From the NCBI GenBank assembly GCA_030704615.1, contig CM060734.1, forward strand, positions 16,678,001 to 16,742,000: 64,000 bases of DNA, written 5' to 3'. This DNA is from Takakia lepidozioides (Eukaryota > Plantae > Bryophyta). Below, piece after piece: positions 3,555 to 63,299 of the stretch. Position 1 is the stretch's first letter; each line of letters opens with the position of its first letter. The notes beneath the pieces are model-generated. The model was not told the DNA's origin, ran no database searches, and was given only the letters and a program-made list of their open reading frames with translations. Made by a program: the position numbers and the translations under genes.

Positions 3555-5495
3555 CTCCCTTTCTACCTCTATCTCCCCCTCTCTCTCCCTCTCTCCCTCT
3601 CCCTCTATAACTTTTTGGATTTCATTTGGCCCTGATATTTACCATTTGCTTCTTTCATCTAAACTGGATGAAATACATGAATAATGGTGACCTATTCTAA
3701 AAATCCAAGAGGTAGTAATTTGTACCATCATAAATGATGGCAGTTACTAAACCTAAGCCTATACCATAACCCTAAGATACCTTTTTATGGGATATCATCC
3801 ATTAACGAAATGCATCTCTTTAAAATGTGATTTTTCATCCACCCTGGATGAGAAATCGGGAAGTTGTGCCCTAAACGGGCCGACATATTTCACAGCACAG
3901 AACTCGTGCTTCAATGATCCTTGATGATGCGCCGTGTAAACCTGCTCCCTTGCGGCTACATGGTACTCGTGATGGCTGGCTTTTGGGATGCGCATTGGCA
4001 AATAGACAGATTCCTCTCTGGCAGTCGACAATGCAGTGATCGCTCTGCTCAGAAATTTATGATTCTGTTAAATTCGTAGCGGCGCTCTTACTCCTCGTTG
4101 GGAAGTACTCCACCCCTACTTAGCCACAGATTACATGTTGCTCTCTTTCTGTATGAGCTACTCTCTATCTGTGAACACTTCTACTTTGATTGCGTTCTGC
4201 TGGAGACATCTATTGGACGCCATGGCGCAGGGCATACCACAAACACTCAAGGTTTTTTTTGAGTGTACCCTTGCTTGGATTATGATTTGTACATGCTTTA
4301 GAATTCAACACTGACATGGATAGCAACTGTGAAAACCTGCCACTCACCTGATGCATCCTCACTAACACACATCTCTATGTGGTGGTTTTTGGGACGGGCA
4401 CAGGTGAGGGTCTTCACTTGTCTTGAATTATTGAAGCTTGCAGAGTCTGATTCATGCATAAGGGATTGCTGCTACCGCCTGAAGGTGCTGATACCAACTG
4501 TTGTTTCAAATATGCCATCTTGCTGCCTCAAATCGGCTTCAAGTCTGCTCTAATGAGGATCACCTTCTTACTCCTTATCCCTGTTTTTGGTTCTTGATAA
4601 CCACTTCTATATGTTTTGGAGTTAAGACACACAAGGGACTTCATAGAAAACAAAATCTCTATTGAAGGCTCTGGCTGTTTTCAACAAAAGTACATGGCTG
4701 CGGCTATAGCTCTGGCAGCATGGAAACTAAGCTCTGAAATGAAACACCATGGCCTGGCTCTGATGGATCAGAAGATAGACCTTGTGATAACAAACATTCT
4801 TCAAGGCTCTTATATCACCACTATTTCATTGCATGATAGGGGACAATGGTTTCTGAGTTCATTTCTTTAACTAGCAAAGTTTGTTATGAGGCCCTGGAAT
4901 ACCACTCCAGGCCCATATCTACTTGAGGGTACTCAGCCCTATGGTTTGTGTTGTTAGAAGTCTGGCTTATGACTTGGCACTGAAGCACCTTCAGACCTGG
5001 CCCCATCAGTATTTTGGTTTTCAAGAACTGCTTGCTGGTAGATGTTGTGCGCTTCCTACCTTATACTATGGCAGAGTTTTGATCTTGAAGTCCTAGAATA
5101 ACTATCCAGGCTTACATATGCCTGAAAAAACTCAGCCCCGTTTCTACTTTATGAATCTTGCATGTGTCTTGGCACTGACAGATCAGTTTCACGCCTACAC
5201 AGGATGCTGTTTTAGGAAGATGAATGGCTCAAGAACTAGATTATGTAAGGCTTGACCCGTGTCAACAACAAAAAATGAATGCTTTATGTCAACTTATGGT
5301 GCTTTCAGGATATGAATGACCAGGAATCCCGCCCTCCCACCCTGTTTTTTCAGATACCCTGAAAAGTTATAAGATGTTCAAATGAGTTGGTAAAAGGGGT
5401 TGTTAGATGATGTCCTGTAAAGGGTTGCTTTGTCTTTCAATGACAATGACCTTAGTGGTCTTGTCCATGTCTTGACATGACATGTATATCTTCTC
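3555..5495 (+). mobile_element. PLE non-coding region (pLTR-like), diverged copy A
   Basis: Colinear with 7373-9110 and with the reverse complement of 61270-63018: (CTCTCC)n tract, TTCATCC..GGATGAA palindromes, CCTCACTAAC hairpin and GGTCTTGTCCATGTCTTGACATG motif. Confidence 0.75.
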
Positions 5496-5499
5496 TCAC

Positions 5500-7360
5500 T
5501 TCTTATATGGATAAGTTACACCTATATATGTATATGGTTTCTTGACGATACGGATGATAATCATACCGGTTTCATCCCTTTTTTTGCCTGAGGTGCTATG
5601 GTTTTGTGGCATGCTGATGGGATTTCATCCCGTTTTCATCCTGTTATGACAAATGGCCTCCTGGAATGGCCATTGCTGTGATAAACCTGGTTCTTTTAAT
5701 CCTAGTATTCTTAACAGCTTTCATTGACTGACAAACTGTCAGCTTTGGAATGAATGAATTACCTGGATGAATGTCGCAGCCTGACACTAAATCGTCAATG
5801 CAAACCCTATTTCCTCCTTTGCGCATTGACATCTCCTGCGCGATGGGCATGGTAAAGCCAGGGGGCTTAGGCAAGTGGTTACGATAACCACTTGCTTGGC
5901 TTTTTAAAGGATTCTATGAATGATCCCTCATGGTTCAATTATGAACGCCAGCGCTTCTTACGACATCCAGGATGGTTATCATCTTTGCTGAAGTGATTGC
6001 TGATGAGGGAATTCATGCGGCAGTTATGAATGACAGGCTGCTTTGGTGTTTCTGTGAATCCTTCCCCCTGAAGAATTATGAACGGCGGCACTCCTTATGA
6101 AGACAGGAAGGCACCCTTCCTCTTTATAATGTATGCTTTGCTTGCACTGGCTCAATGTTTTTTGCTCAGTCTCATTTTACTAAGACTTGGAGCTGTTGGA
6201 GCTGCTCATTGTCTTTGTTCAAATCTGCTTTCAAGGACGTCGTGCTGTTTGGTGCAAGGGCTTGCTGCTGTGTCTTGCTCAGTTTATTTGCAGGCTGGGG
6301 AGCTATGGCTAGGATCCCCCAGTTCGTTCAAAGGTTTTTGAGATCTGGTTTGCTACCGGCCTAGGAATTATGACATCTTGTTTTGCTTGAATTCTGATTG
6401 TTGGACATCGATAGCAAGTATGACTACCTGCCACTCACCTCGTGCATCCTCACTAACACACAATATTCTTGTGGTGGTTTTTGGGACGGGCACAGGTGAA
6501 GGTGGTCATTTGACATGATGATTTTCTAAGCATACAGGATTCCGTGGTTTCTTCAAGGGTACAAGGGCTGCTGCCTGACCGACTCGTTCATCAGGGATTA
6601 TGGTACTCTCTCTGGTTTTCACAAACTACAAAGCTTCATCTGGTTTTTTGTCACTCAAGGACAGTAATGATCTTTGTTTCTTAGTTTATGACAGTCAAGT
6701 TCCAAACTTATGACTTCATTTGCTGGTCACTATTCTGACCTGCATATGTTTTTTTCAGAACCACAAGGGGTACTTGTGTGTTTTTCACAAACCCCTAGCA
6801 TCTACATGACAATCAGGCCCTATGGAATTTTTCAACTGTTCTGTTTATGATACCCTGCAGAACTAATTGTGAAATCTCTTTATCATACCATAACATTTGT
6901 ACTGCTCTAAACAGATTTTTGACATGCTGATAATATCCATCAGACATGTACACTAGGCTTTGCAGAGTCACATGTGATACATGCTTGGATTTTCAGCCAC
7001 CTTTAAACATCTGCATGGCTTTTTGATACAAAGGCTACCTGGAAAACAGCATCTGTACTTTATGCTTAATAATAATTTTCCAGAGCTGTATCTAAAACAG
7101 TATGGAATATCACTTGCCTTTTTGTATCTGCAAACTAATTGGGGTACAAAGGCTCTTTGATAAAGAGCTTGTATGTGCTGGAATGTACCCATTTGGAACA
7201 CTATAACAACCTGATAAACGGCATCTCCACAAGATGCATAACAATTATCAGGGATATGCTAAGTAAACAGCATGATGTCTCTTTGGCCTTTTATCTCTGG
7301 ACAATCAGGATACATTGGCAGTATGGTAAAGGATATTTTGCATTCTGGAAGGGCCATGAC
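5500..7360 (+). mobile_element. More diverged related unit between copies A and B
   Basis: Contains the conserved CCTCACTAAC...GTGGTTTTTGGGACGGGC hairpin at 6420-6509; the rest is only weakly similar. Confidence 0.45.
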
Positions 7361-7372
7361 TGAGCAGCAGCA

Positions 7373-9200
7373 CTCTCCCTCCCTCCCTCTCTCCCTCTCC
7401 CTCTATAAATCTTTGGATTTCATCTGGCCTTAACCTTTTGAGGTTATTTAGTTTTTCATCCCTGCCTTTTTCATCCAAATCTGGATGATTTTATTTTATT
7501 GGATGATGAAACTTAATATACAGAAAGCTAGAGTTACCATCTATTTTTTTCATCTAAACTGGATGATCTACATAAATAATGGTTACCTATTATAAAATCC
7601 AAGAGAATAATAAAACTACCATCATAAATGATGGCAGTTATTAAACCTAAACCTATACCATAACCCCAAAAGATACATTTCTATGGGATGTTATCCAGTG
7701 CCAAAATGCCTATCTTGGTAAAATGTGATATTTCATCCATCCTGGATGAAAAATCGGGAAGTTTTGCCCTAAGCAGGCCGACACACTTCAAGCACTGAAC
7801 TCGTGCTTCAGTGAACCTTGATGATGCGCCGTATAAACCTGCTCCCCTACTGCTACATGGTACTCGTGATTGCTGGCTCTTGGGATGCGCAGTGGTGGTT
7901 AAACAAATTCTTCTATGGCAGACGACAAAGCCGTGATTGCTCTGATCAGGAACTCATGGTTCTTTATTTTGCAGCGGCGCTTTTACTCCTTGTTGGGAAG
8001 TACTCTATCCCTATTTATCTACATATTACTTGTTGCTCTCTCTTCGTGTATGAGCCACTCTCTAGCTGTGAACGCTTCTACTCTGATTGCGTTCTGTTGG
8101 AGACAATCTGTTGGACGCCATGGCGCAGGGCATACCACAAACACTCAAGGTTTTTTGAGTTTACCATTGCTTGAATTGTGATCTGTACTTGCTTTAGAAT
8201 TCAACACTGACATGGATAGCAACTGTGAAGACCTGCCACTTACCTGCTGCATCCTCACTAACACACATCGCTATGTGGTGGTTTTTGGGACGGGCACAGG
8301 TGAGGGTCTTCACTTGTCTTGATTTCTTGAAGCTTGCAGTTCCTGGTCTTGCAAGTGTGGATACTGCTGCTGCCTAAGCTGCTGATGCCATCTGCTGTTT
8401 CAAACTGCCACCATGCCGCTTCAGACCTGCTCCAAGATTGCTCCAATGAGGATCTGCTTCTCTCTTTACCCCTGTTTACGGTTTTTTACAACCACATTTG
8501 CATGTGTAGGAGTTTAGCTATGAAGGATACAAGGATACAAAATAGCAGTTATTACTTTGACTGCCTTGATACTTGGCTCTGAAATGAGAACTCTTGATAT
8601 GACTCTGATGGATCAAAAGGATAGGCTTTGATAGATAACACACATTCTTCAAGGCCCTCATATCATTTTGGTTTCATGGCTTGATAACAAACTGGGGTTT
8701 CTGAGCTGCTCTTTCACCTTGGCAGAACTACTTTATGTGGCCTTAAAATACCATTCTGGGCTCTACACTGTTGTTTCTTCTTCCTTTTTAAGAATCTTGC
8801 TTATATCTTGGTTCTAAAACATCATCTTCAAACCAAACCTGCAATCTGGTTTTTGAAATGAGTTTAAAATGGATTCTTGAGATGATGATGTGTACTATGG
8901 TGCTTTCATGATATGAATGACCTGGAATCCCACCCTCCCGCCCTGTTTTTTCAGAGACCCTGAAATGTAATTGGGTATTCAAATGAGATTGTAAACATGA
9001 AAGAGAATGTTAGATGGTGCCCTGTAAAGGGCTATTTTGTCTTTCAATGACAATGACCTTAGCGGTCTTGTCCATGTCTTGACATGATATGTATATCTTC
9101 CCTCTCTTTATTTGATCAGTGTACTTAGTGGTTTTTGTACACACCATCTACCCTTACCTTTCTCCTTTTCACCTTCTCATTTTGTTATATTGACAAATGT
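7373..9200 (+). mobile_element. PLE non-coding region (pLTR-like), copy B
   Basis: 7373-9110 is a near-identical reverse complement of 61270-63018 (identical 88-aa spurious ORFs 7915-8181 and 62215-62481), which lies 3' of the PLE RT; 9064-9200 is also similar to 17127-17010. Confidence 0.85.
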
Positions 9201-9402
9201 TCTCGGGGGGCTTTGACAGAAAGTCACCAAAGGAGGTCCTAGCTGGAATGAGGACCTCATAGCCCTGGGGTATTAGTCCCCACTACCTCCTCCAATTCCT
9301 GCTGTGCAGGCAAGCCTCGCACAAGTCACACCAAGCGACTTCCATGCTGCATTGCAAAAGATGGATACTGAGGCCGTGGAAAATTCAGGTGATTAAAACC
9401 CC

Positions 9403-10758
9403 GTGTTATTACTTGAAACCTTGGCTTGGGAAAATTGGGTTGCACTTGGCATCATGGCAAATAAGAATGGCAGGTACCTGGAGAAGCTCCAGGAATTCAA
9501 TACTAAAATGATTGAGGTACTGGAAGATGATGCCGAGGAGCTGATACAATGGGAAAAGAAGGGATCATCCATTGAGGCAGCTCTTAGAATGGCGAACCCA
9601 GAAGATGACCAGACTGTCTCCACGCAGAAATCTACAAACACATCTGAAAAAGACTTCATCCCTTCTGTAAGTAATCACCCAATCCTTGGGCACATGATTT
9701 TACCGGATGATGAAAAAGAGGCAGTGAGAGAATTCTGTGAACAAGTAGAAATCTCACAAGTGGAACAAGAAAGGGCAGCAGGTGCCACTCCTGGAAATCT
9801 GCAATTTGTCCCTTGGTTGCCTCCCCGTGCAGTTGAATTAGAGGTTGCCAATAACGATCACATGATGTGGCACCCACATGCTAATATCAATTTATTGGCA
9901 CCCATTTCTATTGAAATGTGGGTCAAATGGGGCAACATTACTCCTGCTGAACGCAGTAGGTGTGCACAGGATGCTAAGGAGGGTTTTCAGAGAATAAAAA
10001 AGGAACCTATTGCTGTGGCATGGCCACTAAGGACCTTCTACTACAAGCTCTGTGACAAAGGTGAGAACCTTACCCTGAGGACCAAAAATGACTTGCCGAC
10101 TGGTTCGGCTAGATCCAAAAATCACAAGAGTCAACTCTTCAACTGGCATCGTCCCTACATAAGATGTAACTGTGGACAAGGAGGGGCACCCTCTTCTTGC
10201 ATTGGGAGTGTTGCTTGGTTTGACCATATGGTATGGTATATGCTGAACAATCTGATTGTGTTCTTCCCTGATGATGCCTATCCTTCGGTGCAAACCAAGT
10301 ATTACAGCTTTCTGGTATGGATCATGCGGGCTGCCAGATCTGCCGTTCTTGCACAAATTACCTTCCAGATGACCCGGGGCTTCATAATGGAAGCAGCTTG
10401 TGAATTCTCAATTGACCCCCAAGCCAAGTTGCTTGGGAAGTTAGGAGAATCCAAGGGGGCCAGATACATTGAGAAACTTGTGAAACCTGGGTCTTTTTCA
10501 GACAGCCTTCCCAGGCCACAATTCAACAGCTACAAACGACAGCGTATGGAGGGGCAGACGCCTCCTCAACAAGGCAAGAACAATGCCACTCGAGGCAGAG
10601 GTACCCCTGGTCGTGGAAGAGGTCTCTACCAAAGAGGAGGACGCTCTGGCAGGGGGCAATACTCTACCAACACCTCTGAGAATTCAAGAGCAACGAATCG
10701 GTCATCACTTGGGGGTTCGGGTCTTTGTGTGTTGTTGTTGGAGCAGATAAATGTATGA
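9403..10758 (+). CDS. Uncharacterised ~450-aa ORF with acidic helical N-terminus and RG/RGG-rich C-terminus; candidate ORF1 of the PLE
   Basis: Long open frame starting just after PLE copy B; RGRGTPGRGRG..RGGRSGRG tail; last ~15 codons probably run into the adjacent LINE remnant. Confidence 0.55.
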   Translation: MLLLETLAWENWVALGIMANKNGRYLEKLQEFNTKMIEVLEDDAEELIQWEKKGSSIEAALRMANPEDDQTVSTQKSTNTSEKDFIPSVSNHPILGHMILPDDEKEAVREFCEQVEISQVEQERAAGATPGNLQFVPWLPPRAVELEVANNDHMMWHPHANINLLAPISIEMWVKWGNITPAERSRCAQDAKEGFQRIKKEPIAVAWPLRTFYYKLCDKGENLTLRTKNDLPTGSARSKNHKSQLFNWHRPYIRCNCGQGGAPSSCIGSVAWFDHMVWYMLNNLIVFFPDDAYPSVQTKYYSFLVWIMRAARSAVLAQITFQMTRGFIMEAACEFSIDPQAKLLGKLGESKGARYIEKLVKPGSFSDSLPRPQFNSYKRQRMEGQTPPQQGKNNATRGRGTPGRGRGLYQRGGRSGRGQYSTNTSENSRATNRSSLGGSGLCVLLLEQINV

Positions 10759-13700
10759 GGATGGAGGTGGCGTGCTGAGGGTGCTTGGGATGAGCCACCA
10801 GGGAGGAGTATGCAGTTAGCAGCATATAGGTGATATGGGAGGGGTGATGGCGGGAGACATTCAAATCGTAGGGGATAGTATAGCCTTGAAGTGAGGCATA
10901 TCTGGCCATATGTAGCGTCAGGTACAATAAACATTGGTCAGACCAGGAGCTGTGTAATGTTATGATACTTGAAGGACCTGGGGCCCCCACCGTGTTGTAT
11001 ATCATTAAGTGTGTGGTAATATGAGCTGGGATTTACTGGCATGAAGTTGTATCCCTTGTGTAGTGATTTTGATGCGGGGGGGAGGTATGCTAGAGTAGGT
11101 GTTTGGGAGGGGGTAGTGTTTTGCCTGCAAGTGAAGAGTGGGAGTAGGTGTAGATGAGAAGTTAGAAGGGAGGTAGACCATCTGCAGGTTCCATGGAAAT
11201 TTCGGGGTGTACTTGTGAAAGTATTTGCTGGGGATGACCCAGTGGTGTTGGTGGGGAAAGATATATAATGGTGGAGAGGGCACGGGTTGTTGCTCTACCT
11301 GGTGTACAGAGAGTTTTGGTCGCATCTCACTTGCAAGTTTGAATCCGCTGTCTTTAGACTATACACCAGGAGATACAACAATTTGCATTATGCACACAGG
11401 GGGTAGGACATATGCTAAAGCGTGGATTCTGTGTCATGACCGTAACACTTGGGGCAGATGCACGATATCATAAGTCATGCCCGATCAATCCATTTCGGAC
11501 GACGAATCTGAGCTCCGTAATCAACCGATAGAGCACACACTAGAGGACGTGGACCCCGAGTTGGCAGCACTGCATAGGCTTCTAGAACCCGGGGACATCT
11601 TTGTAGATCTTAGGCCAACTGACAACATTAGATATACTCTACACCGTGGAGGGGGGGGTTTAGCGATGCCCGGCGTCGCTATTCGCCTATTTTCGGGCCC
11701 GCGAAAATCGTGAATCTGCGGCACCGGAGGCGTTGCAGATGTGTCGCTATGAGAACGTCATAGATGTAGGGCTTAAGGCGACGCCGGGGGGGGGGGGGGG
11801 GGTCGCAGATTTGCAGATGCGTCGTTATGAGAACGTCCCAGATGCAAGACTTAAGGCGATGCCCGGGGGGTCGCAGATCCAACCCCCCTGAAAAATCCCC
11901 ACTAACGACGCCCCAAGCGTCGCAATGACTGCGACGCCCGGGGCGTCGCTATAGCCACACAGGAGGGAGAAAAAATAAAATAAAATAAAATAAATCGTTT
12001 TTTTAAAGCGACGCCTTGGGGGTCGCTTATTGAGGTTTTTTTTAATTTTGAATTTTGAAAAATGATGGGATCCACACGGTTCAAAAAATGGCGGACACAC
12101 ACTTGCCACGTAGTGTCAAACCTAACCCATAAGCATGTGTTTGCAAGTAGCCGACGTTCCTAAATCATTCAACGTGTTGTTAGGCAAATTTGAACTCAAG
12201 CCCTCTAAATTATACACATAGTAAGACACTTCATACTAATCAACATATCAGTTACAAAACTTACACACAAACTCATGATTTAATTGGACATAAGGTAGTT
12301 CATGCATACATCGGTTGCTCGTCGGGACCTCAAAGCGATACTCCTCGCGTCGCTCAAATGTAAGCGACGTCTTTGGCGTCGCTTTTCCTGTACCCTCTAC
12401 TGCAAAAACCAAAAAATGATTTGCGACGTCTCAGCCGTCGCTAAAAATGACTTACCAAAAAAAAAACTCAAAAGCCACGCCCAGGGCGTCATTAAAAAAA
12501 CGACGTTGTTTTTTTTTTTTTTTTTTTTTTTTTTTTCTTCGGAGTGCTTGAAGGCGTCGCAACCTCCCAACCAACATTCGGAAGATCGCACCGGGGGCTG
12601 ACTCCCAGTGCGTCGCGATTTTATGGATTTGGCATTATGTCTACGACGCCAGGAATGTCGCATGGGGGCTTGCGACGCAAGATGGGGGCGCTGCGGGGGT
12701 GTCGCACAGGAGAGGCGCCACTGGGGGACAGGTATCGCTAAACCCCCCTAAACTTAGTAGTGATAGTTTATGGACTACATGAAACATAGTTGAATTCATG
12801 GAAGGGGACGTACTTATACGTGTAGAACACCAAGTTTACAAGTCTAGGATGCTAGTATGGGAGATGATCGAAACAATTGGTAGAGATAGAGAATGGATGG
12901 TGTCCAAGCGTGAAATCTTATCTTACAAGAACACTTTGAGAGATATCGTCAGGCACTGACGGAGCTGGTGAAACATGCCAGGTTTGGATCAGGCAGTAGT
13001 TCCTGACCATCCAGATATAGGAGACGTACTAATTTCATATAGTGTTGATTTATCACCATATACTAACCCGAGGCCAGCATTCTCATTTCTTGTATTGTAT
13101 ATGCAAGTATGATCTCAGCTTTGATCCAGGTAGCATCTGGGGCTAGTATCGGAGAGTATGGGGGAACTTTTGAGGATAAAGTTTGAGGAGGCTAGATGAA
13201 AATGTTTTTGGAATGCGTTGATGTTACGTTTGGGTATGGATGAGAGAATCCTGGGCTGAGGGGGTGGGGTATGCACATCCGGGATGGGCCGGAATGGTAT
13301 AAGGGATGGGGGGAGGGAGAGTGAGATCGGGTAGTGGTCTCAGTTGCATAAGCTATTGATGTGAACGTGATTGAGAAGGTAGGACGGGATTTCATTACAG
13401 GTTTTGAGGTAGAAACCATCAAGCAGGCTTAATGACGAGTAGTTAAGACCCCCTTGTCTAGAGTAGTGATAATCCGCGGGAATGTATTTGAGATGCAAGA
13501 GCTGGGTGAATTTAGCCTAGTCATGGTCTATGTTAGATGGGGGTTTATGGGTTCCGTTGAAAGAGTGTCCTAGCAGCGCAATGTCCCCGTTGAAGTCGCC
13601 AGCCAATATGATATGGTGGTGTTAGGTATTTGGGTGGGTGACTGTTGCGAGATAGTGCTAAGTATGTCGGGTATAAGGGGGGAGGTCGTTGGTATGTGAG

Positions 13701-14530
13701 GGCATATACAGGTGTATGAGGGTAATAGGGCATAATGCTGGTGGGTGTAGTTGGATGATTTGGAGGTGAGAGCGGAGGGGGATGAGTACGGTTATTTTTG
13801 TGGTTGTACTGGGAGAATGGTGTGTACGAAGAATACCTAGTGCGACACCTCCTCTAGCAGGTTTGTATGGTTCCAAACGGCGTGAGAGACATTGTTGGGC
13901 TGTTGGGGGGTTTCCATATAAGAGGTAATAATCTGGTAGTAGTTTATTTATGTAAGAACTGCTAGTATTGTGGGTGTATAGTTTGGTTTCTTGTAGGAGA
14001 AAGATATGTGGTTGCGAGGATTCGGTGAAAAGATGGAGTAGACTTTGGATACTTGTGGCTAGGGATCCCACGTTCCAAGAGGTGATAGTGAGTGCGTTAA
14101 GGCCATCTCCCAGGGTGGTGGGTACGTGGTTGGAAGGGGGGGTACCTCGGTTGGAGTTGCTACTGTGGGGGGATCGTATCCGGGTATCGAGGTGATGGCT
14201 TTAAGTGTGGCAGAGAGGATATATGGGGAGAGGAAGGGGAATTTATTGGTGTTTAGGTGGTGGGTTTGATCGGGCGGAGGAAATGTTGTGAGATGGTCCC
14301 CTAGAATTTTATGTACCACTCCGGTTTTGAAATCTAAGAGGTTGAGAGAGCTGTGGATCTCGGATAAGTAGTGTGGAGGGGCCAAATAGTTGTGAGGAGT
14401 GGGGGCAGCTTTTATAATTGGTGTATGAGAGAGCGGATTTGCGAAATGGAGCAGGAGTGAAGATATCCATTACAAGTCTCGGGAAGGGGAGAGATAGTTA
14501 CGATAAGGGAGAAGAGGAGTTGTGATGTGG
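10715..14530 (-). mobile_element. Degenerate L1-type LINE remnant (APE endonuclease and downstream region), interrupted by a CACTA element
   Basis: 13658-14385 encodes WNVGSLATSIQSLLHL..PHIFLLQETKL..GGVALG (APE motifs) and APPHYLS..GVVHKILG..NKFPFLS, matching 26668-27414; outer boundaries approximate. Confidence 0.7.
11637..12762. mobile_element. Non-autonomous CACTA (En/Spm) DNA transposon
   Basis: Right end TAGTAGTG (reverse complement CACTACTA); left end CTCTACA (mutated CACTA); both ends continue into G6-8TTTAGCGAT; 3-bp TSD ATA at 11634-11636 and 12763-12765; dense gcgacg/cgtcgc subterminal repeats. Confidence 0.85.
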
Positions 14531-20266: not shown

Positions 20267-20299
<33 letters not shown>

Positions 20300-29148: not shown

Positions 29149-29748
29149 GTGAGGGCAATCCTCCAGCGCAGGAATCACAAGAAGGTGGGTGTGGTTGAGC
29201 GGTATGACAATGATGAGGGGAGAGGTGCAGAAGAACATGGGAGTGAAAGTGGACATTCGCCTGATGCCAATTTTGAAGCAATTGGAATTCCTGCGGTGGA
29301 AGAAGACATGGGGAGCAGGCCTGCCTCCCCTCAGCTGGTAAACATCACGGAATACGAAGAAGGGATGGCCGACTGCATTGCCTTCTTAGAATCCAGATTG
29401 CCTTTGTGGTGTGCGTTGGATTCGGAGTCAGAGTCATCCGACAAGAGTGTGGACGAGGAGGAAATTGGGGAGTATCCTGTACATGTTTTTGAAGAATTGG
29501 AGGTCGTTGAGGAAGAGGACTTCCATTGGAGTGGTGTTTGCATAGACTCTTTTGTCAGTTCTGTTGAACAGGTTATTGTGACCATGGAAACAAAGGCAAT
29601 GGACTCATGTAGTATTTGCCTTCAGTTGACACAACGGGGAGAAACTATACGCATGCTCGGTGTGTGCCTGCACTCCTTCCACAGTGCATGCATTGACAGC
29701 TGGGCTCAAGTGAACGGCACATGCCCCCTGTGCCGGCGTCGCTTGTGA
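29149..29748 (+). CDS. Acidic protein with C-terminal RING-H2 finger (putative E3 ubiquitin ligase)
   Basis: CSICL..GETIRMLGVCLHSFHSACIDSW..NGTCPLCR is a C3H2C3 RING-H2 pattern; start uncertain. Confidence 0.8.
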   Translation: MRAILQRRNHKKVGVVERYDNDEGRGAEEHGSESGHSPDANFEAIGIPAVEEDMGSRPASPQLVNITEYEEGMADCIAFLESRLPLWCALDSESESSDKSVDEEEIGEYPVHVFEELEVVEEEDFHWSGVCIDSFVSSVEQVIVTMETKAMDSCSICLQLTQRGETIRMLGVCLHSFHSACIDSWAQVNGTCPLCRRRL

Positions 29749-52209: not shown

Positions 52210-52350
52210 GGCGTGAGCGTTGCGCGTGAGCGCGCGAGCGTACGCTCATGCCAGCTGACGTGGCGTGAGCGTCATGTCAGCATGCTGATGTGGCGGCAAA
52301 TGATGACGTGGCACTGTCCGTCATCTGCCACGTCAGCATTAACATGCGCC
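52210..52350. repeat. GC-rich self-complementary block of GCGTGAGC and TGACGTGGC/GCCACGTCA motifs
   Basis: Seen directly; a similar block lies at 29862-29980. Confidence 0.65.
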
Positions 52351-52785
52351 GCCTATAACCGAGGATGGTCATATGACCGTGGAATTAATGCAGGGAATCT
52401 TGCCTAAATAGAATCAAGACTACCATGAGGCCTACAATTGTAGCATCCAACATTGTGCAATTACAAATGCTTGTTTCACTTTTACAATTACGAGGACGAG
52501 AAAATATCCTCACAAAGTGTGCGCCATAGAGGCTGCCACTCGAAGACCTTCCTCCCTCCTCAAATAACAATGAGAGTTAGGATCATCTTCAAAAGATGAT
52601 TGAGTGCATAGCGACAGCAAGACATGTAGACTTCGAACGGTGCAATGACAAAAGTGCTTTTAAAAGTTGTCACTCAGAGGCTCACTCCGTATAGTTGGAG
52701 GCCATATCATTGCACCGCCAACGAATTGATGTGAATTACACATTTCAAATCATGGTCGTCCACATACCACATTGCATAGTTGATG

Positions 52786-55700
52786 CTACCCATGTGTTGT
52801 ATCCCACTGCAATAGAGTATCGACCTCGTTGAAACTCATAGTGGCCTGGTGAATGAAGTTGTCACGTTTGGGATCGCAAACCATCTTCTTCAAAAATATG
52901 AAATACAAATGTTTGCAGGGTATGAATTTATCTCTCTTGCCCAAACTGGTTGATAGCATATTCACAAAATCAGGACATGTGCAATTGGGGAAATTGGAAA
53001 CCGTGATGTCGTAGGTCCTGTCATGAACAGTAGATGTGGAAGTGATGATTGTGAATACCCGACTATATCCTGGATCGGGTACTTCCGTGGTGCTTCCAAC
53101 ACGAGCTTGGAGCATTCTTGCGGACTCCACTTTGCCAAAGTGTTCAGCGGTTGGAGGGAAACGCCGAACGAGCTTTCCATCTCGTTTGGTTGGCCACAAG
53201 TCAGGATTTGCCGGGGGGACCCGGGAGGACGTAGATGTAGTAGCACATGCATGGAGTTGGGGTTGTCTCGCAAGGGAAAAGCCTGCCTCCTCCAACATTT
53301 CAATCTCCTGAAATCTGAGATGTGTTCCCACCTTCACGGGCCAAACGGTTGGAGGAGATGGCTTCATCACTACGGAAGGACGCACAGTTCCATGCACACA
53401 TCTGGCACAATCATCTGCGCAGAACCAGAACTTGTGGTTCTTGCCTTCTGGTTGACCGTATGGACGCATCAAACCCGTGAAAGTCGGAGTAGGAGTTCGG
53501 GCACCACCTCTGGATATAGATGAAGTGCACTTCTCGAAATTAGTTGCCCTGATCGCTGTACATTTCACGAGACCCTACACTTGTGCGTTCTATGTGCCAA
53601 ACGTGGTTGGGGCATGCGGACTCAAGCACATCAAGGGGGTTGTTTCTCTCCTGCACCATTTCAATGGCACTATTTGATGTTGGAGCTTGCCGTCGTGTTG
53701 GAGGTTCCTCCACAATGGAGGTTCCGGACATGGAGCTGTCATACAGGGGAACACAAGGCTTTGAGAAGTTATCACGGTCTACCCTGTGCAAATCGGAATC
53801 CGAACCAGGTGGAGTGTTCAATTTCCTCTTACAGGAGCCGAATCTCTCATCCCTTTCAAGATGTAGAACTCTATAAACAAGTGGCGTTCCCTGGGCATAC
53901 ATGCTCACCGCCCGTGCTATCTTGATTGGATCCCCAGATCTGTTTGCAGCACGCAACATCAACTCCCATTTGTCCGGACCCTTGCCACCAACCCCACCTC
54001 GCAAGAAATCACGGTATCGGGTTTGTTGTTGCAAGGCACGTCTCAAATCATCTGTTGTTGCCACATACAAATCCCGACCTCGTTTCCCAGACTGCTGCAA
54101 CCATGCGTTGTGCACAGTTTCTGCCAAATTGCAAGATGGCATGTCCGCCATTTCCTCAATGGACATGTTCTGCAAAGTGGAGAACCACACTTCAAAACAG
54201 TGAACAGAAAACAACATAAAGATGACACAATAAAATGGAAAGTAAATGTGTGAATAAAGCAAGAAATATAAGCCTCGTACCACTGGCATGGCTACTCCCC
54301 ACTGTCTATACTTCGGAACGCCAGCCAATCTTCCAATGCTCTCATACTCTCAAGTGATGCAGCTCCAGAAGAGAACCACCAGGCACGAATTGTCTGGAAC
54401 AAAGTGTCCGCCTCCTTCATTGTTCTAGCATCTTTGTACTTTTTGCACAATTTACGGTGCTGAGTCTGCATCTGTGGTTTGATGTCCGACTTTGTATGGT
54501 TTTCCAGAGATTGTGTCCAATGGAATAGACATGTACGCTCTCTTCCTCGCATTGGCACTTTTGGGTCGCCCGATCCGAAGACAATACGAACAGCATTGAA
54601 ATTTGCTTGAGCACTATCCGCCATGAAACTTGCGAAATTTGGAGATGGCAGCCCATGACACGTATTAGGGAATTCCACATGAGCTTCTGGGATTCTGTAT
54701 CCTCGGATTGCATGTCACAAACTGCAATTGTCATAACTCGTTGGTACACTATATCGTAGATATGACAAGCCATTGTCGTCCAATCCTTCACTCGTTTCAC
54801 ATGATCAAACATAAGAAAACAGTTCTGCAAGTCTCCAGTCTTCTGCATCCGCTTCACGAGGCTAATCCCACTGCCCTCCCCAACAGTCGACATTTTGAAA
54901 AGAAAAACTTTGATGGTACCTTGACCTGGGAATACATTGTCCTGGATGTAATCGTACTTGCTCACTCGTTTCAACTCCAAAATGTTGTCTATGTAGCCTC
55001 TGATACCAGAGCCCATTCTTAATGCATTGATCTGATGCCGAATGTTAGGTGAATTCAAAGTGGAGAAATGATCCATGACCAGGTCCAATGCTGCACCGTC
55101 AAGTTTAGTCCCCACATAATCTCCTTCACTCAAAATATGGTTTTCCAAGAAGGACTTGCTTGCGCCAAGAGCAATTGCAGATGTTGTTGCGGATGGGTTT
55201 CTCCCGAACTCCTGTTTAATCAACCTCGATATTGTCTCAACACTGTCCCTATAATCCCCCTTCGAGACAGGATGGTTATGGAATCCGAAATGCACACAAG
55301 CTCTTGTCATTGTTTCCAAACGGTGGACAATATAGTACATTCTTGCTCCGCAGAGCGCCAAGCAGGATGGCACAAGTTTGCAGAATTTGCAGACAAAAGT
55401 GTTTGCCGGTGGTGGGGCAGTCCCAGGCTGAAATGGATTTTCCGCCAGACCCTCCCATTTGTTTTGATTATGAACCCCAGACTGAAGAAAGTGTCTGCAA
55501 TTCAAATTATCACACCTAAGGTGTCCATTGCAAACTGTTCTCCTGAAAACAAGCTTGTCATCATTCTGAATATTGGATGTTTTTGTTCTGCACCACGGGT
55601 GCCCGTCGTGTTTCTTGTCCATTCCATGCATCATGATTGTTACACCTCCAACTCGCGGAGGAGGAGGCAGCTTGAATAGGATATCGCCATCAAAAGTCTC

Positions 55701-56175
55701 TGGCAAGAACTTCACAGGCACCTGCTTCAAAGATTCCCAATCAATTCCTCGCAACTCACTTTTGAATCCAGCCATTCCTCCCATCGCCCGTAATTTTGGA
55801 ATGACACTACAAATCTCTTCTTCATCAGCTTCTCCAACCACAGTAGGAAGGACTGGATTTGGAATTTCACTTATGTCATCATCGGACGAATCCGAAAGCT
55901 CAACGATTGGAGTGGAGGACGTCTGTTCTTTTTTCACCACCACCTCCCTCTTGTTTCAACGACCGAAGCAGCAGTCCCGGCGTCACATATGACCCAAGGG
56001 ACTTTCGCCGAGGCTCTCCAAGTACTCTGTATCGACCAGGGCGCACTCTCCACTGGCTGACATGAGCCGTCTCATCACGGTTTTGGAAAGAGTATTTCAA
56101 CAACTTTCCTTTCAAATCGTACACCTCTTTCTCCAAAAAGATGGAGCCATTCTGAAGCTGAAAACGGGTAGCCAA
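52786..56175 (-). pseudogene. Mutator-like (MULE) DDE transposase with N-terminal Zn-binding domain and C-terminal SWIM finger, frameshifted
   Basis: DGHPW..C..HLRC..C..CKFC..CGARMY..HNHP; MFDHVKRV..; FMADSAQANFNAVRIVF..CLFHW; NLAETVHN; SWIM CTCPDF..CKHLYF; frameshifts near 54680 and 53570, intron ~54200-54305. Confidence 0.8.
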
Positions 56176-56916
56176 GACATGTTCCAGAACAATTGCAAAT
56201 CCATTGTCAAGGACTTCCTAGGAGAACGGCACTGGTTTGTCGTCAGAGAAGAACTCCGCTTCAGAGGAAGTCATCTTCTTTCCTCGCATACGTTGATACC
56301 TTGTTATCGCAGACCTTCAGTGTAAATCAGTTTACTGATGTCTCCAGAACACAGTTGAAGAATAAGCAGAGAATATGGCGGAGGAAGCTCAAACGACGAC
56401 TGTGCATATTCTGTTATTCCTTCCAGATATGCAGCCGTCCATTTTAATTACTTTTCTTGTGGGCCCAGTGGTCAGAGTTATCCCTAGGAGCAATGTCGGC
56501 AGCTGTTAAACCGTTAATCAGAACCTCATCAATAAACACAATAACAAGCCGACTTCCTGGAAGCATGCCACAGGATCTGAGGGTGGGATTGCAGATTAAG
56601 TAAATGTATCTTTATACTACTACCAATGATCATGCGCACCTGGAAAGTTCAAAATGTGAAACGAACGTGGGGTTGGCTAACAAGGATGAACGTGTATGAT
56701 ATCCCAAAATTTGTCATCAAACTCTCGTTCATTTACATATATTTGTCTAAGACTGTGCGCCAAGATTTCTGGGATTCGCTGTTATTTTTAATATTGAAAC
56801 CGTTCTAATAAAGAACACGCCGTTTATTTTGGGCGACACATGTCAGACATCGATAACTGAATACGAACAGATGTACACTAATTGCTGGCATGTGCACTAA
56901 TAAGGGAACGACTATG

Positions 56917-58339
56917 TGTAACGGTCACGCGAGAGGGAATCCGATGCTTCTAGAGACAAACAACAACGCACGCAATCCCGCAAGAAATCGGGAGTCACTT
57001 CATTTTTCTACTTTTTGCGCTTAGAGAGAGAGTGGTAGTCAAGCTGGAGAGGGTTCCGTCTACAATACGTAAGAGAAGAAAGTCTCTTTATTTTACTTCC
57101 ATTAGAGAGAGACGCAGAGCAAGAGAGCAAATGACGAGGCGTCGTTTGTTGGAGAACACAGGGCCAAGGCAGCAGGTGAACGTGGAGACTGATTCACAAG
57201 AGCAGACCGAGACTGAGGCAGCGGCTGTGACACAGTCGGCGATAATAGTGCGCGTTGGAAACGAGCCTGTGGATGCAGAGATGACTTGCAGGGAAACTGA
57301 AGGAGGTGGAAGTACGAGGAACGCTGAACTTAATGCAAGCACAACAAGCCCGTCAGGGCCTGACACTCCGTATTGCCGGTTTGTAGACTCTGCCAGCCAT
57401 CGAAGGCAGCTGGCGGGGCTCGGTCAAATCCTCCCCACCCCCGCTCTCATCCCATCGGCGTCGTCGCCCATGTCACGTCGTCGCCCTGCGATACCAGTCC
57501 GCCAGTCCTTGTAACCTCATCTCGTGATATCCCATGTAACCCGCCGCATGTCAGCCCCTGTAACTCCAACTCATGGAACCCGCGCATTATAACCCTGCTT
57601 CATGTAACCCCAACTCCTAATATCCGATGTAATCCTATATCGTGTAATCCCGCTATCATGTAACTCTATATCGTGTAACCCTATCTCATGTAACTCGCGA
57701 CCATGTAACCCTGTAACCCTACCCCTCAGTGCCGTGTAACCCTAAATAGTGTAACTCTGCCCTTTGTGAGCCAAACAGTGTAATCCCCATTGTCAGTTCC
57801 ACCAGCCCTCCATTCCTTGTAACCCCACCTCATCTAACCCTTCCAATGTAAGCCCCGCCACATGTAATCCCGACCGTGTACCGCCCGCCATGTAATCTTG
57901 TGACACCCAGTGTAACCCTTCATAGTGTCACCCCGTACCATGAAACCCTCCAATAACCATCTGTAACCCCAAACCGTGTAACCCCCCACCATTCATGTAA
58001 CCCCGACTCATGTCACCGTGTCAGTTTTGATCACCTCACCAATGAAACATGTAACCCCGATTATGTCACCCTTTGTAACCCTATATCGTGTCACCCAATG
58101 CTTGTTACCCTCCAGTGCTTGTCACCCTAAGTAACCCCAGCTCATGGAACCCCCACATGTCCACCCTGTCACCCTATGTAAACCCGCCTCATGTAATCCT
58201 ACCAATGTAGCCTCACCTCTTGTCACCCTCATAACCCCGGCTCATGTATTCCCAATGCATGTGACCCTATATTGTATATCCCGAGACTGTAACCCCAACG
58301 TGGTGGGAAAATTTGGTGGGCTCGGAGAGGTGTCAGACA
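56917..58339 (+). mobile_element. Probable LTR with internal TGTAACCC-rich repeat tract
   Basis: TGTAAC start, TCAGACA end; dozens of degenerate (T)GTAACCC units at 57510-58300; no TSD found. Confidence 0.5.
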
Positions 58340-58429
58340 TTTTCAATTTTATGTATTGCATCAATACTGTCATTGTGAATGTCGCCTCTAGAGTGGACCG
58401 GTGTTCCAGCCACGTTGGCAAATTGCAAA

Positions 58430-58760
58430 GATGAGTGGAACATATTTCTATCGTTTAAGTCTGAAGTTTGTGCCTCCATATGTGGGACCTTTTTGCATTC
58501 GAAAATTTATGAATGAGGACGTTTACGAGTTGGAGCTGCGAGCGGAAAGCAAAGTACACCATGTGTTCCATGTCTCGCTTTTGAAGCCGTATTTTCAGGA
58601 TGAAGTGTGTCCAACTTGGCATCAAGTTTTGCGTCCACCACTTGTGTTGTTGAACATGAAAATGAACCCGAGTACGAGGTGGAGGCAGTACTTAAATCGA
58701 GGAGATTCAAGAACCGAGAAACATAGTAACTCGTGAAATGGAAAGGCTAGGTCATATCAA
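58430..58760 (+). pseudogene. Ty3/Gypsy chromovirus integrase C-terminus and chromodomain fragment
   Basis: YVGPF..YELEL..VHHVFHVSLLKPY, then frameshifted EPEYEVEAVLKSR..LVKWKG. Confidence 0.85.
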
Positions 58761-58974
58761 AGAGCTACCCAAGGGCCTAACAAGAAAGATCATGTTCAAG
58801 ACAGCTCACCCACAAAATGCCCAGTGCATTTTCTCCACACATAAACCAGAGGGGGCAGTCCATGTCCAAGAACTCCCTTGTTCCATACTTCTTCATTTCT
58901 GCAACAATCTGAAGTCCACCTCTTAAAAAAAAAAAAACAAAATCTGCAACCTGCATAGCATGGCCTCAAAGAAA

Positions 58975-59065
58975 GTAGAAGACCCTCGCCTGTCGCCCGT
59001 CCCAAAAACCACACACCAAGGTGAGAGTTAGTGAGGAAGCTTGAGGTGCATAGTGGGTCTTCTAC
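58975..59065 (-). ncRNA. Most diverged copy of the conserved PLE-associated structured RNA motif
   Basis: GTAGAAGACCC/GGGTCTTCTAC closing stem around CCTCACTAAC..GTGGTTTTTGGGACGGGC (minus strand). Confidence 0.6.
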
Positions 59066-60059
59066 GCATGCTATAGCTTTCCAAATTAAAACTATGCTAA
59101 AGCAGGAAACATAAAGAGGTACAGAGCCAAATTTACATGAAAAATAGACTCTTGGACTTGATGCCCAAGAGGTAATGTCATTCCCCTTGGAGCACTATTA
59201 GAGATATCACAGGTTTACAGCAGAATCAGCTGTAAAATATACGTGTTGTATGCAGAAGTAAAAAAAAGTTAAGAAATCTCAAGGCAAGGCAAAAAGAACC
59301 CATAAGCCTAAGAGGATATGTTATAAACGGAACAGATTATCTCCCTGTCAACCATCTGCAGAGTCCATAATCCAATCAATAAGAATTAGTTTCATGAATT
59401 TGCTTATAAGTAAGCCCAGGGTTCAGAGAACAAAAAACTTTAGTGTATACCATGCAATGCTTTAACATAAGCTTATTACCATCAAGAACCTTCCTTGCAA
59501 AGCTTACCTATGTTCAACAAGAGCCTTTAAGTTAAAAATAAGGAACTCTCGAACTTATGAAGCAAGGCTGCAGGTAATGACCAAGTTATGATGCCAGGGT
59601 AAGATACATCTCCCTGTCAATAGTTGGCAGAGTTCAAAACCTTTGTAGCCAAAACCATACCCCTGGAAATTCCCCTCAAGCAGGTCCTAGGGCTCCAAAG
59701 CCACCATCACTACTACGTTTCCTACAATATTTTTCCAAGTCCCTTAGAACCAAACCACCAGCAGGGTAGTAGTTCATCGAACCTTAAAGGCTGCGGGAGG
59801 TTTGCAGCCTGCGACATCCTTGCTACGAGTCAAACGACACCCACCAACGTACCAACTCAATCGCAGAGCAAGGCAAGCGATTGTCAAAACAAGAATGCAG
59901 CAAATTTAGGAAGACGAGAAGAGAGAGGACTTAGCATCAGGAGGGAAGTGCTCCTGCAGAATTTCACCATCCTGTAAGCCCCTTGTTTCTGACAGTACAT
60001 AGGTACTAATGTCAAAGATTTCTCAATCTCTCAGAAGAATCGGCCGCCCCCACCAACTG

Positions 60060-60850
60060 CCTCGTACACCATCATCAGGGGGTGTGTAATACGCAGGTTG
60101 CATGGACCAAAAACCCGGCAGGTTTTACATGAGGGAAATCTCCACTCAGCATGCCCAGCAAACAAAACCACGACAGTACACTGACACCCTTGAGGAGAGT
60201 CTGCTGCCCCAAAACAAGCCGCCCTGTGCACCATCATATGGTAATGTGTAACCAATCTAGCAACGGTAAAAAATCAAACAGGTTTCCCATCAGCCTACGA
60301 GCCTCTCGATTTTGACAATACCCAGGCCAAGGATGCCAAGGCATTCGTAAATAGGTATCTGCAAGGTAATCGTGAGGGGTTCCTGTGAAATGTAAGTCCA
60401 GGAATCATACATCCTTTGTAGAAAACCCTTGGACTTTGCGGAACAGCCGCCATCCCTGTAACCGCCTCGTACATAATCATGAAAAGACGTTTTAAAAACT
60501 TTGCAAGGGCCAAAAGGACTTTGATAAATCAGTATGGTAATGTATCACCACCAAAAAAACTGCCCTGTACATCATCATATGGTGATGTGTAACCATTCTT
60601 GCAAGGGTAAAAAACACCAAACAGGTTTCTCATCACCCTGTGAGCTTCTCGATTCTGACACCGCCGGGGCCAAGGATTGCTTAGCAATCGTAAACCTATT
60701 TCTGCCAGGTAATCCAAAGGGGGTGCCTGTGAAAGGTAAGTCTAGGAACCCGTTGGTCTTACAGGGAGATATACCAACTCAGAGAGAAGCCGCATATGCC
60801 ATCATGATCAAGCACGCAGCATACCGTGCAATCATGATAATCGAAGGCAA
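60060..60850. repeat. Degenerate ~340-bp tandem duplication with recurring GCC.(C/T)GT.CA..ATCAT submotif
   Basis: 60221-60400 is similar to 60562-60750; submotif also at 60060 and 60464. Confidence 0.6.
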
Positions 60851-61216
60851 AGCTTACCCGATCCACCTGCAGGGTAGTCTTAGGTGGTACATGGTCTGTC
60901 GGGAATGTAATCACAGCACATCCAGGGTTCAAAACCCGAAGCCACCAGAGATAATGCTGTTACAAATAACCTTTATAAGATGCATAATCAATCTATCCAT
61001 AAATTGTTTTTTCCATATATAAACAACCAGTGCCAATTCATTAATTTACTGCATCAAGTAAATTAAGTAGCAGGTTTTTTAGAGAGATGACAGATACATT
61101 ACCTTTCTTAGAGAGAAGAAAGGTAGTTATAACATGTATTGTCAAGAATGAACCAACGAAATATCATTTTTCCTAGAAAAAAGGAAAATGATGACAAACT
61201 GCAGCAACATGATTAA

Positions 61217-61262
61217 ATTGTACTCATAAGACGTCGTTTGCCGTAGCCTTGTGGCCATTGAC
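61217..61262 (-). mobile_element. 46-bp 3' tip of the RTEX-like LINE
   Basis: Matches 38943-38988 with one mismatch; candidate TSD gattaaa on both sides. Confidence 0.85.
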
Positions 61263-61269
61263 TGAGGAT

Positions 61270-63299
61270 TAAAGAGAGGGAAGATATACATGTCATGTCA
61301 AGACATGGACAAGACCGCTAAGGTCATTGTCATTGAAAGACAAAACAGCCCTTTACAGGGCACCATCTAACATTCTCTTTCATGTTTACAATCTCATTTG
61401 AATACCCAATTACATTTCAGGGTCTCTGAAAAAACAGGGCGGGAGGTGGGATTCCAGGTCATTCATATCATGAAAGCACCATAGTACACATCATCATCTC
61501 AAGAATCCATTTTAAACTCATTTCAAAAACCAGATTGCAGGTTTGGTTTGAAGATGATGTTTTAGAACCAAGATATAAGCAAGATTCTTAAAAAGGAAGA
61601 AGAAACAACAGTGTAGAGCCCCCTTAAGCAGGTATAGGCCTAGAATGGTATTTTAAGGCCACATAAAGTAGTTCTGCCAAGGTGAAAGAGCAGCTCAGAA
61701 ACCCCAGTTTGTTATCAAGCCATGAAACCAAAATGATATGAGGGCCTTGAAGAATGTGTGTTATCTATCAAAGCCTATCCTTTTGATCCATCAAAGTCAT
61801 ATCAAGAGTTCTCATTTCAGAGCCAAGTATCAAGGCAGTCAAAGTAATAACTGCTATTTTGTATCCTTGTATCCTTCATAGCTAAACTCCTACACATGCA
61901 AATGTGGTTGTAAAAAACCGTAAACAGGGGTAAGGAGAGAAGCAGATCCTCATTGGAGCAATCTTGGAGCAGGTCTGAAGCGGCATGGTGGCAGTTTGAA
62001 ACAGCAGATGGCATCAGCAGCTTAGGCAGCAGCAGTATCCACACTTGCAACAGGAACTGCAAGCTTCAAGAAATCAAGACAAGTGAAGACCCTCACCTGT
62101 GCCCGTCCCAAAAACCACCACATAGCGATGTGTGTTAGTGAGGATGCAGCAGGTAAGTGGCAGGTCTTCACAGTTGCTATCCATGTCAGTGTTGAATTCT
62201 AAAGCAAGTACAGATCACAATTCAAGCAATGGTAAACTCAAAAAACCTTGAGTGTTTGTGGTATGCCCTGCGCCATGGCGTCCAACAGATTGTCTCCAAC
62301 AGAACGCAATCAGAGTAGAAGCGTTCACAGCTAGAGAGTGGCTCATACACGAAGAGAGAGCAACAAGTAATATGTAGATAAATAGGGATAGAGTACTTCC
62401 CAACAAGGAGTAAAAGCGCCGCTGCAAAATAAAGAACCATGAGTTCCTGATCAGAGCAATCACGGCTTTGTCGTCTGCCATAGAAGAATCTGTTTAACCA
62501 CCACTGCGCATCCCAAGAGCCAGCAATCACGAGTACCATGTAGCATCAGGGGAGCAGGTTTATACGGCGCATCATCAAGGTTCACTGAAGCACGAGTTCA
62601 GTGCTTGAAGTGTGTCGGCCTGCTTAGGGCAAAACTTCCCGATTTTTCATCCAGGATGGATGAAATATCACATTTTACCAAGATAGGCATTTTGTCACTG
62701 GATGACATCCCATAGAAATGTATCTTTTAGGGTTATGGTATAGGTTTAGGTTTAATAACTGCCATCATTTATGATGGTAGTTTTATTACTCTCTTGGATT
62801 TTATAATAGGTAACCATTATTTATGTAGATCATCCAGTTTAGATGAAAAAAATAGATGGTAACTCTAGCTTTCTGTATATTAAGTTTCATCATCCAATAA
62901 AATAAAATCATCCAGATTTGGATGAAAAAGGCATGAAAAAACTAAATAACCTCAAAAGGTTAAGGCCAGATGAAATCCAAAGATTTATAGAGGGAGAGGG
63001 AGAGAGGGAGAGAGAGGGACCCACCAGCCAATCCCCTGGCATGGCAGAACCTTACGGAGTAAGTGTGGTATGCACTCACCCCGTAAGGGAGTGCATACCA
63101 GACCTCTTCTCATAAGGTTTTCCCTTCCATGTAGTTCTATCCTCAGATAATATTTATCCAAAGGAGTAGAATCCTACATCCTCACTTCCTCGGATCAAGA
63201 ATGAAATGATGGCATAAAATGTATCATAGCAACACTAGTATAGTATCACTTAGAAAAGAACGTAGAGTTCAATGGTATAACATAGCTCTGTATAGGTTT
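61270..63299 (-). mobile_element. PLE 3' non-coding region (pLTR-like), copy C
   Basis: Directly downstream of the RT stop; near-identical to 7373-9110 except small indels (e.g. ~20 extra bp near 61620). Confidence 0.85.

Follow-up and report, generated by a model that had tools for sequence, protein, structure and literature searches.

Among the major classes of eukaryotic retroelements, Penelope-like elements (PLEs) are the least understood. Neither the reason why their introns are retained nor the significance of this retention is known (PMC8557442, PMC2377424). In Penelope itself and in a Chlamys element the transcription start and an intron of the 5′ untranslated region (5′-UTR) are both located in the pseudo-long terminal repeat (pseudo-LTR or pLTR) (PMC8557442, PMC2377424). 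Spliced and unspliced RNAs both occur for Penelope, and removal of the Penelope intron abolished reporter expression without loss of RNA (PMC2377424, PMC8557442). The locus analyzed here is a 64,000-nucleotide (nt) stretch of the Takakia lepidozioides genome (contig CM060734.1, positions 16,678,001 to 16,742,000), referred to as the window, in which an earlier note had recognized five copies of an RNA hairpin and had assigned them to a PLE family. We think it rather probable that a spliceosomal intron residing in the pseudo-LTR of a PLE forms this hairpin by folding of its 3′ end, and that the hairpin throttles splicing.

Probable use of a 3′ splice site inside hairpin c2

Contigs of four public sequencing runs were compared with positions 3600-9200 of the window. 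Run X1 is a deep DNA run, and runs X5 and X7 are RNA by the guess of the tool used. A 350-nt contig of X5 matched positions 5826-6130 with 0 mismatches and resumed at position 6496, skipping 365 nt with GT..AG ends. Position 6495|6496 corresponds to the CAG|G sequence inside c2, the second of the five hairpin copies (c1 to c5). Because a probable RNA contig joins 6130 to 6496 with GT..AG ends, hairpin c2 contains a used 3′ splice site. The 6130->6496 joint was not seen in the DNA contigs of X1, one of which (6102-6318) spans the donor contiguously and without mismatches. At the c2 locus, DNA thus retains the intron that the probable RNA contig lacks, and the hairpin module as such is present in 22 distinct copies (see below). 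In a contig of X7 that stems from a paralogue, a different donor was joined to the same acceptor. Run X7 also revealed a second GT..AG intron (6603-6758) located 107 nt downstream of the first acceptor (joint 6601->6758, cut +1), and its depth was 16-88 inside the first intron versus 299-395 in the flanking bins. The spliced transcript belongs to the low-copy unit B that carries c2 and is built as follows (stems P1 and P2 are described in the next section):

5826 to 6130, plus strand: first exon in the spliced RNA from unit B, taken from the X5 contig, the start of which is a lower bound for the transcript start.
6131 to 6495, plus strand: spliceosomal intron of 365 nt with GT..AG ends, of which the last ~90 nt contribute the 5′ strand of hairpin c2 together with its loop.
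6496 to 6602, plus strand: exon 2, of which the first ~14 nt form the 3′ strands of P2 and P1; the intron at 6603-6758 follows.

The sequence CUAAC is located 38-39 nt upstream of the used AG in c2. All 19 copies with a retained acceptor AG|GYGRRG have a CURAY sequence 29-44 nt before this AG, and in 17 of these 19 no AG occurs within the last 28 nt before the acceptor. The tract between branch point and acceptor is U/G-rich, not pyrimidine-rich. Judged by its sequence and spacing, the branch-point-like motif is most probably a spliceosomal branch point. An ordinary intron branch point had been named beforehand as an outcome that would refute the proposal of a novel RNA, and the RNA junction together with the CURAY-AG spacing points to just that.

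The hairpin evolves as a folded RNA

All five hairpin copies reported for the window are present, and their stems read as described, with c3 and c5 being one duplicate so that four copies are distinct. An 18-mer core has five exact occurrences in the window, all at the positions given by the earlier note, against a chance expectation of 0.05, and exact matches to a 10-mer upstream core are found solely at these five sites. The copies and their boundaries are:

4313 to 4420, plus strand: module c1, with P1 formed by 4329-4337 and 4409-4417, and P2 by CACCU (4345-4349) and AGGUG (4402-4406); its limits were set by loose contig ends at 4312/4313 and 4410-4420.
4362 to 4366, plus strand: CUAAC of c1, with the putative branch A at 4365 and a predicted acceptor at 4403|4404.
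6404 to 6518, plus strand: module c2, in low-copy unit B, the resemblance of which to the other copies is limited to this stretch; its acceptor 6495|6496 is the one found in use in the X5 contig.
8209 to 8321, plus strand: module c3, within terminal-repeat unit A3.
58967 to 59081, minus strand: module c4, the most diverged copy of the window, with one additional pair in P1 and one A-C mismatch in P2.
62075 to 62187, minus strand: module c5, the counterpart of c3 in a 99% inverted duplicate.

Both c3 and c5 are part of a single 99% inverted duplication (7379-9110 versus 63014-61270), and the ~1.8-kb unit that holds them has an 84% paralogue in c1. Independent contexts are limited to c2 and c4, which have just ~80-170 nt in common with the other copies. 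No convincing alignment was obtained outside the module between the A units, unit B and the unit of c4; a module of ~110 nt has been kept where the surrounding sequence is no longer alignable.

From 5′ to 3′, the module consists of a single-stranded GACAUGGAUARCAA, the 5′ strand of P1, a short bulge, the 5′ strand of P2 (CACCU), stems P2b and P3, a terminal loop with a CUAAC-type branch point and a U/G-rich tract, and then the returning strands. The acceptor CAG|G is located inside P2 (AGGUG), and the first ~14 bases of the exon close P2 and P1.

Single-sequence folding of the window copies gave a long hairpin with z-scores of -1.4 to -3.7. RNAalifold, applied to seven sequences, predicted P1, P2, P2b and P3, with seven pairs changed on both sides. 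A covariance model built on the same seven sequences was searched in the window and in public contigs carrying related retroelements. It detected 22 distinct copies; several of the loci are the same element from different samples, and this number is not a count of species. Matches were located exclusively on the strand of the reverse transcriptase (RT), in every fetched element locus with sufficient flank. Exact-pattern scans of metagenome and genome contigs yielded nothing, the patterns having been taken from the window core, which the relatives do not share, and a search for copies through a spurious open reading frame (ORF) across the hairpin produced no candidates.

Among the 22 copies, 87.9% of the cells hold a pair, versus 38-47% for slid partners. 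Both sides have changed in 12 of the 21 pairs, and the covariation score was reached by no shuffle. Seven of the nine pairs of P1 covary, and as many as five pair types occur at a single position. Covariation is also seen in P2b and P3, and P2 (CACCU with AGGUG) is almost invariant. Covariation of the closing stem, first noticed in the window, thus grows with sampling. Because G-U pairs outnumber A-C mismatches by 41 to 12 on the plus strand as oriented in the earlier note, this is the folding strand. The fold is real and evolves like a folded RNA, and the description of the hairpin as a structured RNA with a conserved core and covarying stems is supported.

Other details of that description did not extend to the relatives. 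The core is invariant within the window; beyond it, a probable-RNA contig has a variant core and the relatives keep parts only. The small apical stem, which had been described as covarying, is not conserved in relatives, nor is the helix of ACUAAC with GUGGU that was to leave one A bulged; there, CUAAC is located in the terminal loop closed by P3. The features conserved across the 22 copies are the single-stranded motif 5′ of P1, ACCU, CURAY at 29-44 nt before AG, a U/G-rich and AG-free tract, and GGG(C/U)ACAG|GUGAGG. The G-run stretch before the acceptor reads GGGACGGGC. Compared with these features, the "invariant core" of the window reads as the family-specific version of branch point, tract and acceptor.

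Two further observations concern individual acceptors. Locus L027 contains two module copies (4280-4398 and 5755-5873) with CAA in place of CAG before GUGAGG; the acceptor AG is displaced by one base, the donor-like GU is retained, and P2 has one additional mismatch. In all five window copies a second conserved YRCAG is present ~41 nt 3′ of the hairpin AG (4437-4444, 6531-6537, 8331-8338 and the equivalents in c4 and c5), and by its sequence it could be an alternative acceptor.

The probable host element, a two-ORF Penelope-like retroelement

The module probably belongs to an endonuclease-less two-ORF PLE and its non-coding derivatives, the RT having been classified by motifs, Pfam listing and tblastn. 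The assignment of the hairpin to PLE terminal repeats is supported by the presence of an RT end and an ORF1 in the window, and by a locus, L017, in which pseudo-LTRs hold the module. The parts of the element in the window are:

3540 to 3607, plus strand: CT-rich simple repeat joining units, with a second one at 7375-7407.
3608 to 5505, plus strand: non-coding unit A1, of terminal-repeat type and high copy number.
7408 to 9143, plus strand: unit A3; other genomic copies have a (CT)n run at ~9142-9144 (loose contig ends of X5 at 9142 and of run X6 at 9144).
9241 to 10758, plus strand: ORF1 homologue of the two-ORF element, ~100 nt past unit A3, with no RT after it here.
61270 to 63014, minus strand: CT-rich joint and unit A5, together matching 7379-9110 in inverted orientation at 99%; read along the minus strand, they follow the RT fragment.
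63303 to 63998, minus strand: C-terminus of an RT, ~230 residues, cut by the window edge, with 49-54% identity in tblastn to P0012, P0013, P0016 and P0052.

Within the window, CT-rich simple repeats link the units in head-to-tail order, and the RT fragment is located directly upstream of unit A5 in transcript sense. Unnamed homologues with 33-39% identity exist for the ORF past unit A3 (9241/9403-10758), and on their contigs a second ORF is present, with a length of ~600-770 residues. In locus L001 this second ORF displays RT motifs A, B′ and C in the style of telomerases and PLEs. This RT ORF has 142 relatives, and PF00078 is given in the precomputed Pfam column for seven of them, including P0016. 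A Pfam scan of the two pieces of the L001 second ORF gave no match, a Pfam scan of 20 window ORFs detected no RT, and a sequence search of the PDB with the RT piece returned nothing useful; the RT fragment at the window edge was found solely by tblastn with relatives.

The complete arrangement is seen in L017. It has direct repeats of 1585 nt that are 99.9% identical, each opening with a (TTC)n run and each holding the module. Between the repeats are an ORF1 of 429 residues and an RT of 709 residues without a further domain; the RT ORF ends ~135 nt before the repeat, and no further ORF is present. No nuclease family, GIY-YIG included, appears in the precomputed Pfam columns of the relatives. 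Loci L001 and L003 have diverged modules both upstream of ORF1 and downstream of the RT.

Several observations bear on the units themselves. The 1.7-kb inverted duplicate of the window (97.7-99% identity) has its copies 52 kb apart, one followed by ORF1 and the other preceded by the RT end; both are young and represent one terminal-repeat unit, present once in each orientation. A contig of X7 joins position 8302, 3 nt past the hairpin AG, to position 5441 in the 3′-terminal region of an A unit with non-canonical ends, and probably represents a shorter deletion derivative of the non-coding unit. A GCCC-N4/5-GGGA(U/A)GUACC motif is located directly before (CTT)n joints in L001 (13338-13406 and 15080-15148) and L017 (1-44 and 1585-1629) and is also present in the first 100-200 nt of L004/L005; its sequence and position make it a likely 3′-terminal hairpin of the element. 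In L001 this motif is preceded by UGAUGAG, which looks hammerhead-like and has no Rfam match. In L002-L006 and L003 a YAG|G is located a few to ~30 nt before the likely start of ORF1, a sequence that suggests the end of a further conserved intron.

Proposed functions of the hairpin

According to the explanation that we favor, the intron would lie in the pseudo-LTR, the promoter and 5′-UTR region, of a nuclease-less two-ORF PLE lineage and of its non-coding derivatives. The acceptor and the tract upstream of it would be locked in helices, their partner strands being upstream intron sequence and downstream exon sequence, and the branch point would be exposed. With both parts paired in this way, recognition of the acceptor should be slowed. 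Part of the RNA would then be spliced, as expression needs, and part would stay intact and provide an intron-containing template for new copies; throttling by the hairpin would in this way set the ratio of spliced to unspliced RNA.

Several points weigh against this explanation. The RNA status of X5 and X7 is a guess of the tool, though their behavior fits RNA. The read evidence consists of assembled contigs rather than raw reads and hence provides no ratio of spliced to unspliced RNA. No spliced contig was found for the high-copy A units, and splicing is evidenced for c2 and one paralogue only. The alignments behind the pair counts were fitted to the structure of the model and are thereby biased toward the fold. 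A helix over the acceptor could also be neutral or could help in the choice of the 3′ splice site. Finally, the module is the sole common part of non-coding units that need no translation, and a role in mobilization in cis fits this at least as well.

This last point leads to the alternative that the hairpin constitutes a recognition or packaging signal for the RT or the ORF1 protein of the element, which is compatible with a role as acceptor and to which we give limited credence. Since the hairpin spans the splice site, splicing destroys it, so that only intron-containing RNA would be copied. In its most specific form, in which a hairpin straddling the splice site (5′ half intron, 3′ half exon) and present in unspliced RNA only is recognized by the RT or the ORF1 protein, the proposal is slightly more doubtful still. 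A cis signal is favored by the fact that the ~110-nt module is the sole sequence common to otherwise unalignable non-coding units, by a DNA depth of the module ~40-100x that of the unit B flanks, and by long invariant stretches that exceed the needs of splice signals, with P1, P2b and P3 covarying. It also agrees with the general knowledge that telomerase-type RTs bind structured RNA. For the one PLE that has been studied in vitro, the RNA motif bound by the protein was mapped to a region of 172 nt at the start of the ORF, immediately beyond the junction of pLTR and ORF (PMC11167929); this is a precedent for binding, but the RNA required in that system is at the start of the ORF and not in a 5′-UTR intron. 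Moreover, the module is located 600-1000 nt from the 3′ end of its unit, far from the expected start of priming. The RT binding or priming signal considered in the earlier note keeps some plausibility. If a cis signal were true, it would offer a concrete mechanism by which PLE introns, unlike those of other retroelements, are passed to new copies, and it would explain why protein-free passenger units keep a ~110-nt module while the rest diverges.

The sequence CAG|GUGAGG might also be a dual (recursive) splice site that acts first as acceptor, after which the regenerated GUGAGG would be used as a donor, joined to an acceptor immediately ahead of ORF1; this second step would remove the rest of the pseudo-LTR from the mRNA. 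GUGAGG directly follows the AG in 16 of the 19 acceptor copies, including positions +4/+5, which are unpaired in most relatives. In L002-L006 and L003, the YAG|G that closely precedes ORF1 would provide the second acceptor, and the 5′-UTR intron of Chlamys-3_cRei spans the boundary between pLTR and body (PMC8557442). We nevertheless judge a recursive site to be improbable: the spliced X5 contig retains 44 nt past the acceptor, the next intron starts 107 nt on and has its own donor, and no GT..AG joint starting at the hairpin is among the joints listed.

The idea favored in the earlier note was an undescribed self-cleaving or branching ribozyme, and what speaks for it is a conserved core with covarying stems in a class of retroelements that usually carries hammerheads, combined with the absence of a hammerhead here. 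The Rfam scan that the note had called for was run and assigned the hairpin to no known family. No match was obtained for the whole window with Rfam 15 at the gathering threshold, and permissive-E scans of the hairpin, of 3000-11000 and of L001 gave noise only; the best match on the hairpin (HDV-F-prausnitzii, 11.4 bits, E 7.8) was below the gathering score. Hammerhead, HDV-like, twister, pistol, hatchet, hairpin and the other self-cleaving families of Rfam 15 were all absent at gathering score, in agreement with the lack of a canonical hammerhead reported before. However, what is conserved corresponds exactly to the signals at the 3′ end of spliceosomal introns, and in the spliced contig the AG is paired with a GT donor located 365 nt upstream. 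In addition, the core is not kept across relatives except for its splice-signal-like parts, and the bulged-A helix is not conserved. A new ribozyme is therefore very improbable.

Equally remote in our view is a DNA-level element (an internal promoter or a protein-binding palindrome) without RNA structure: the Penelope intron overlaps the internal promoter region (PMC2377424, PMC8557442) and long invariant blocks might be protein sites, but the stems change yet stay paired, with many G-U pairs on one strand only, unlike a DNA protein site, probable-RNA contigs start several hundred nt 5′ of the hairpin, and the Penelope sequences essential for transcription lie outside the intron (PMC2377424).

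Some other identities were considered and rejected. A small nuclear RNA or spliced-leader RNA has an Sm-like U run in its favor, but the order of the parts is wrong and there is no Rfam match. In a microRNA precursor the stem would be the conserved part, and here it is the loop. A coding exon does not agree with indels that are not multiples of three. A short interspersed nuclear element derived from transfer RNA and a hammerhead on the opposite strand were likewise dropped.

Other features of the window

An inverted repeat of 337 nt (15471-15807/15875-16211) with 99% complementarity and a 67-nt spacer forms a foldback. Two similar palindromic blocks of G-runs and C-runs are located at 3380-3540, in the CT-rich tract before unit A1, and gave many spurious matches to microRNA families in the permissive Rfam scan. 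Long ORFs on the minus strand at 52786-55943 have a weak match to a SWIM zinc finger (E 0.0028). An ORF on the plus strand at 29149-29748 ends in a clear RING-H2 finger (E 2.5e-11) and is probably an exon of a host gene.

Comparison with known systems

As far as literature searches show, a structured splice-acceptor module of plant PLEs was previously undescribed. The module is a small and defined RNA (~110 nt, with 22 natural variants and compensatory changes) that holds the branch point and acceptor of an intron and has been kept across divergent plant PLEs and non-coding derivatives. Two ideas thereby become testable, namely that an RNA structure sets the balance between spliced messenger and unspliced template, and that the identity of the template depends on a structure that splicing destroys. 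A false lead is also removed, in that the hairpin is very probably no new class of ribozyme.

Long introns of animals contain recursive splice sites (ratchet points), in which an acceptor AG directly precedes a consensus donor GURAG. Here too an AG is followed by a consensus donor, but the spliced contig keeps the downstream sequence. Domain VI of group II introns and the helix of U2 with the branch site, with which the hairpin had been compared at the outset, resemble it in an ACUAAC-type sequence with an A that can bulge. Here, in contrast, the A is located 29-44 nt and not 7-8 nt from the splice site, there is neither a domain V nor an Rfam match to group II introns, and the helix is not conserved, so that the analogy to domain VI was abandoned.

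The yeast structures between branch point and 3′ splice site, for example that of COF1 (PMC3239191), likewise place a conserved fold at the 3′ end of an intron near the branch point; there, a stem between branch point and AG aids recognition, whereas in the present module the branch point is enclosed by the stems and the AG is itself part of them. The stem-loop at the 5′ splice site of murine leukaemia virus (PMC2794156) is similar in that both RNA forms are needed and the splice site is located in a stem, of which the pairing and not the sequence matters. It differs in concerning the donor of a retrovirus and in having been tested by mutation, while our case concerns an acceptor in a plant PLE and is read from sequence. 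Hammerheads of PLE terminal repeats and retrozymes (PMC4209133) are also small conserved RNA structures that occur in non-coding derivatives as well; our module has no hammerhead core or Rfam match, and what is conserved in it are splice signals and not a catalytic core.

The closest system is the 5′-UTR intron of Penelope from Drosophila virilis and of Chlamys-3_cRei (PMC2377424, PMC8557442). It belongs to the same class of elements, is located in the terminal repeat 5′ of the ORFs and is retained in genomic copies, and spliced and unspliced RNA have both been seen. Here, unlike there, the last ~90 nt of the intron and the first ~14 nt of the exon form a long covarying hairpin, such as is not described for Penelope or Chlamys in these two papers (PMC2377424, PMC8557442), and this module recurs in divergent two-ORF nuclease-less elements and in non-coding units.

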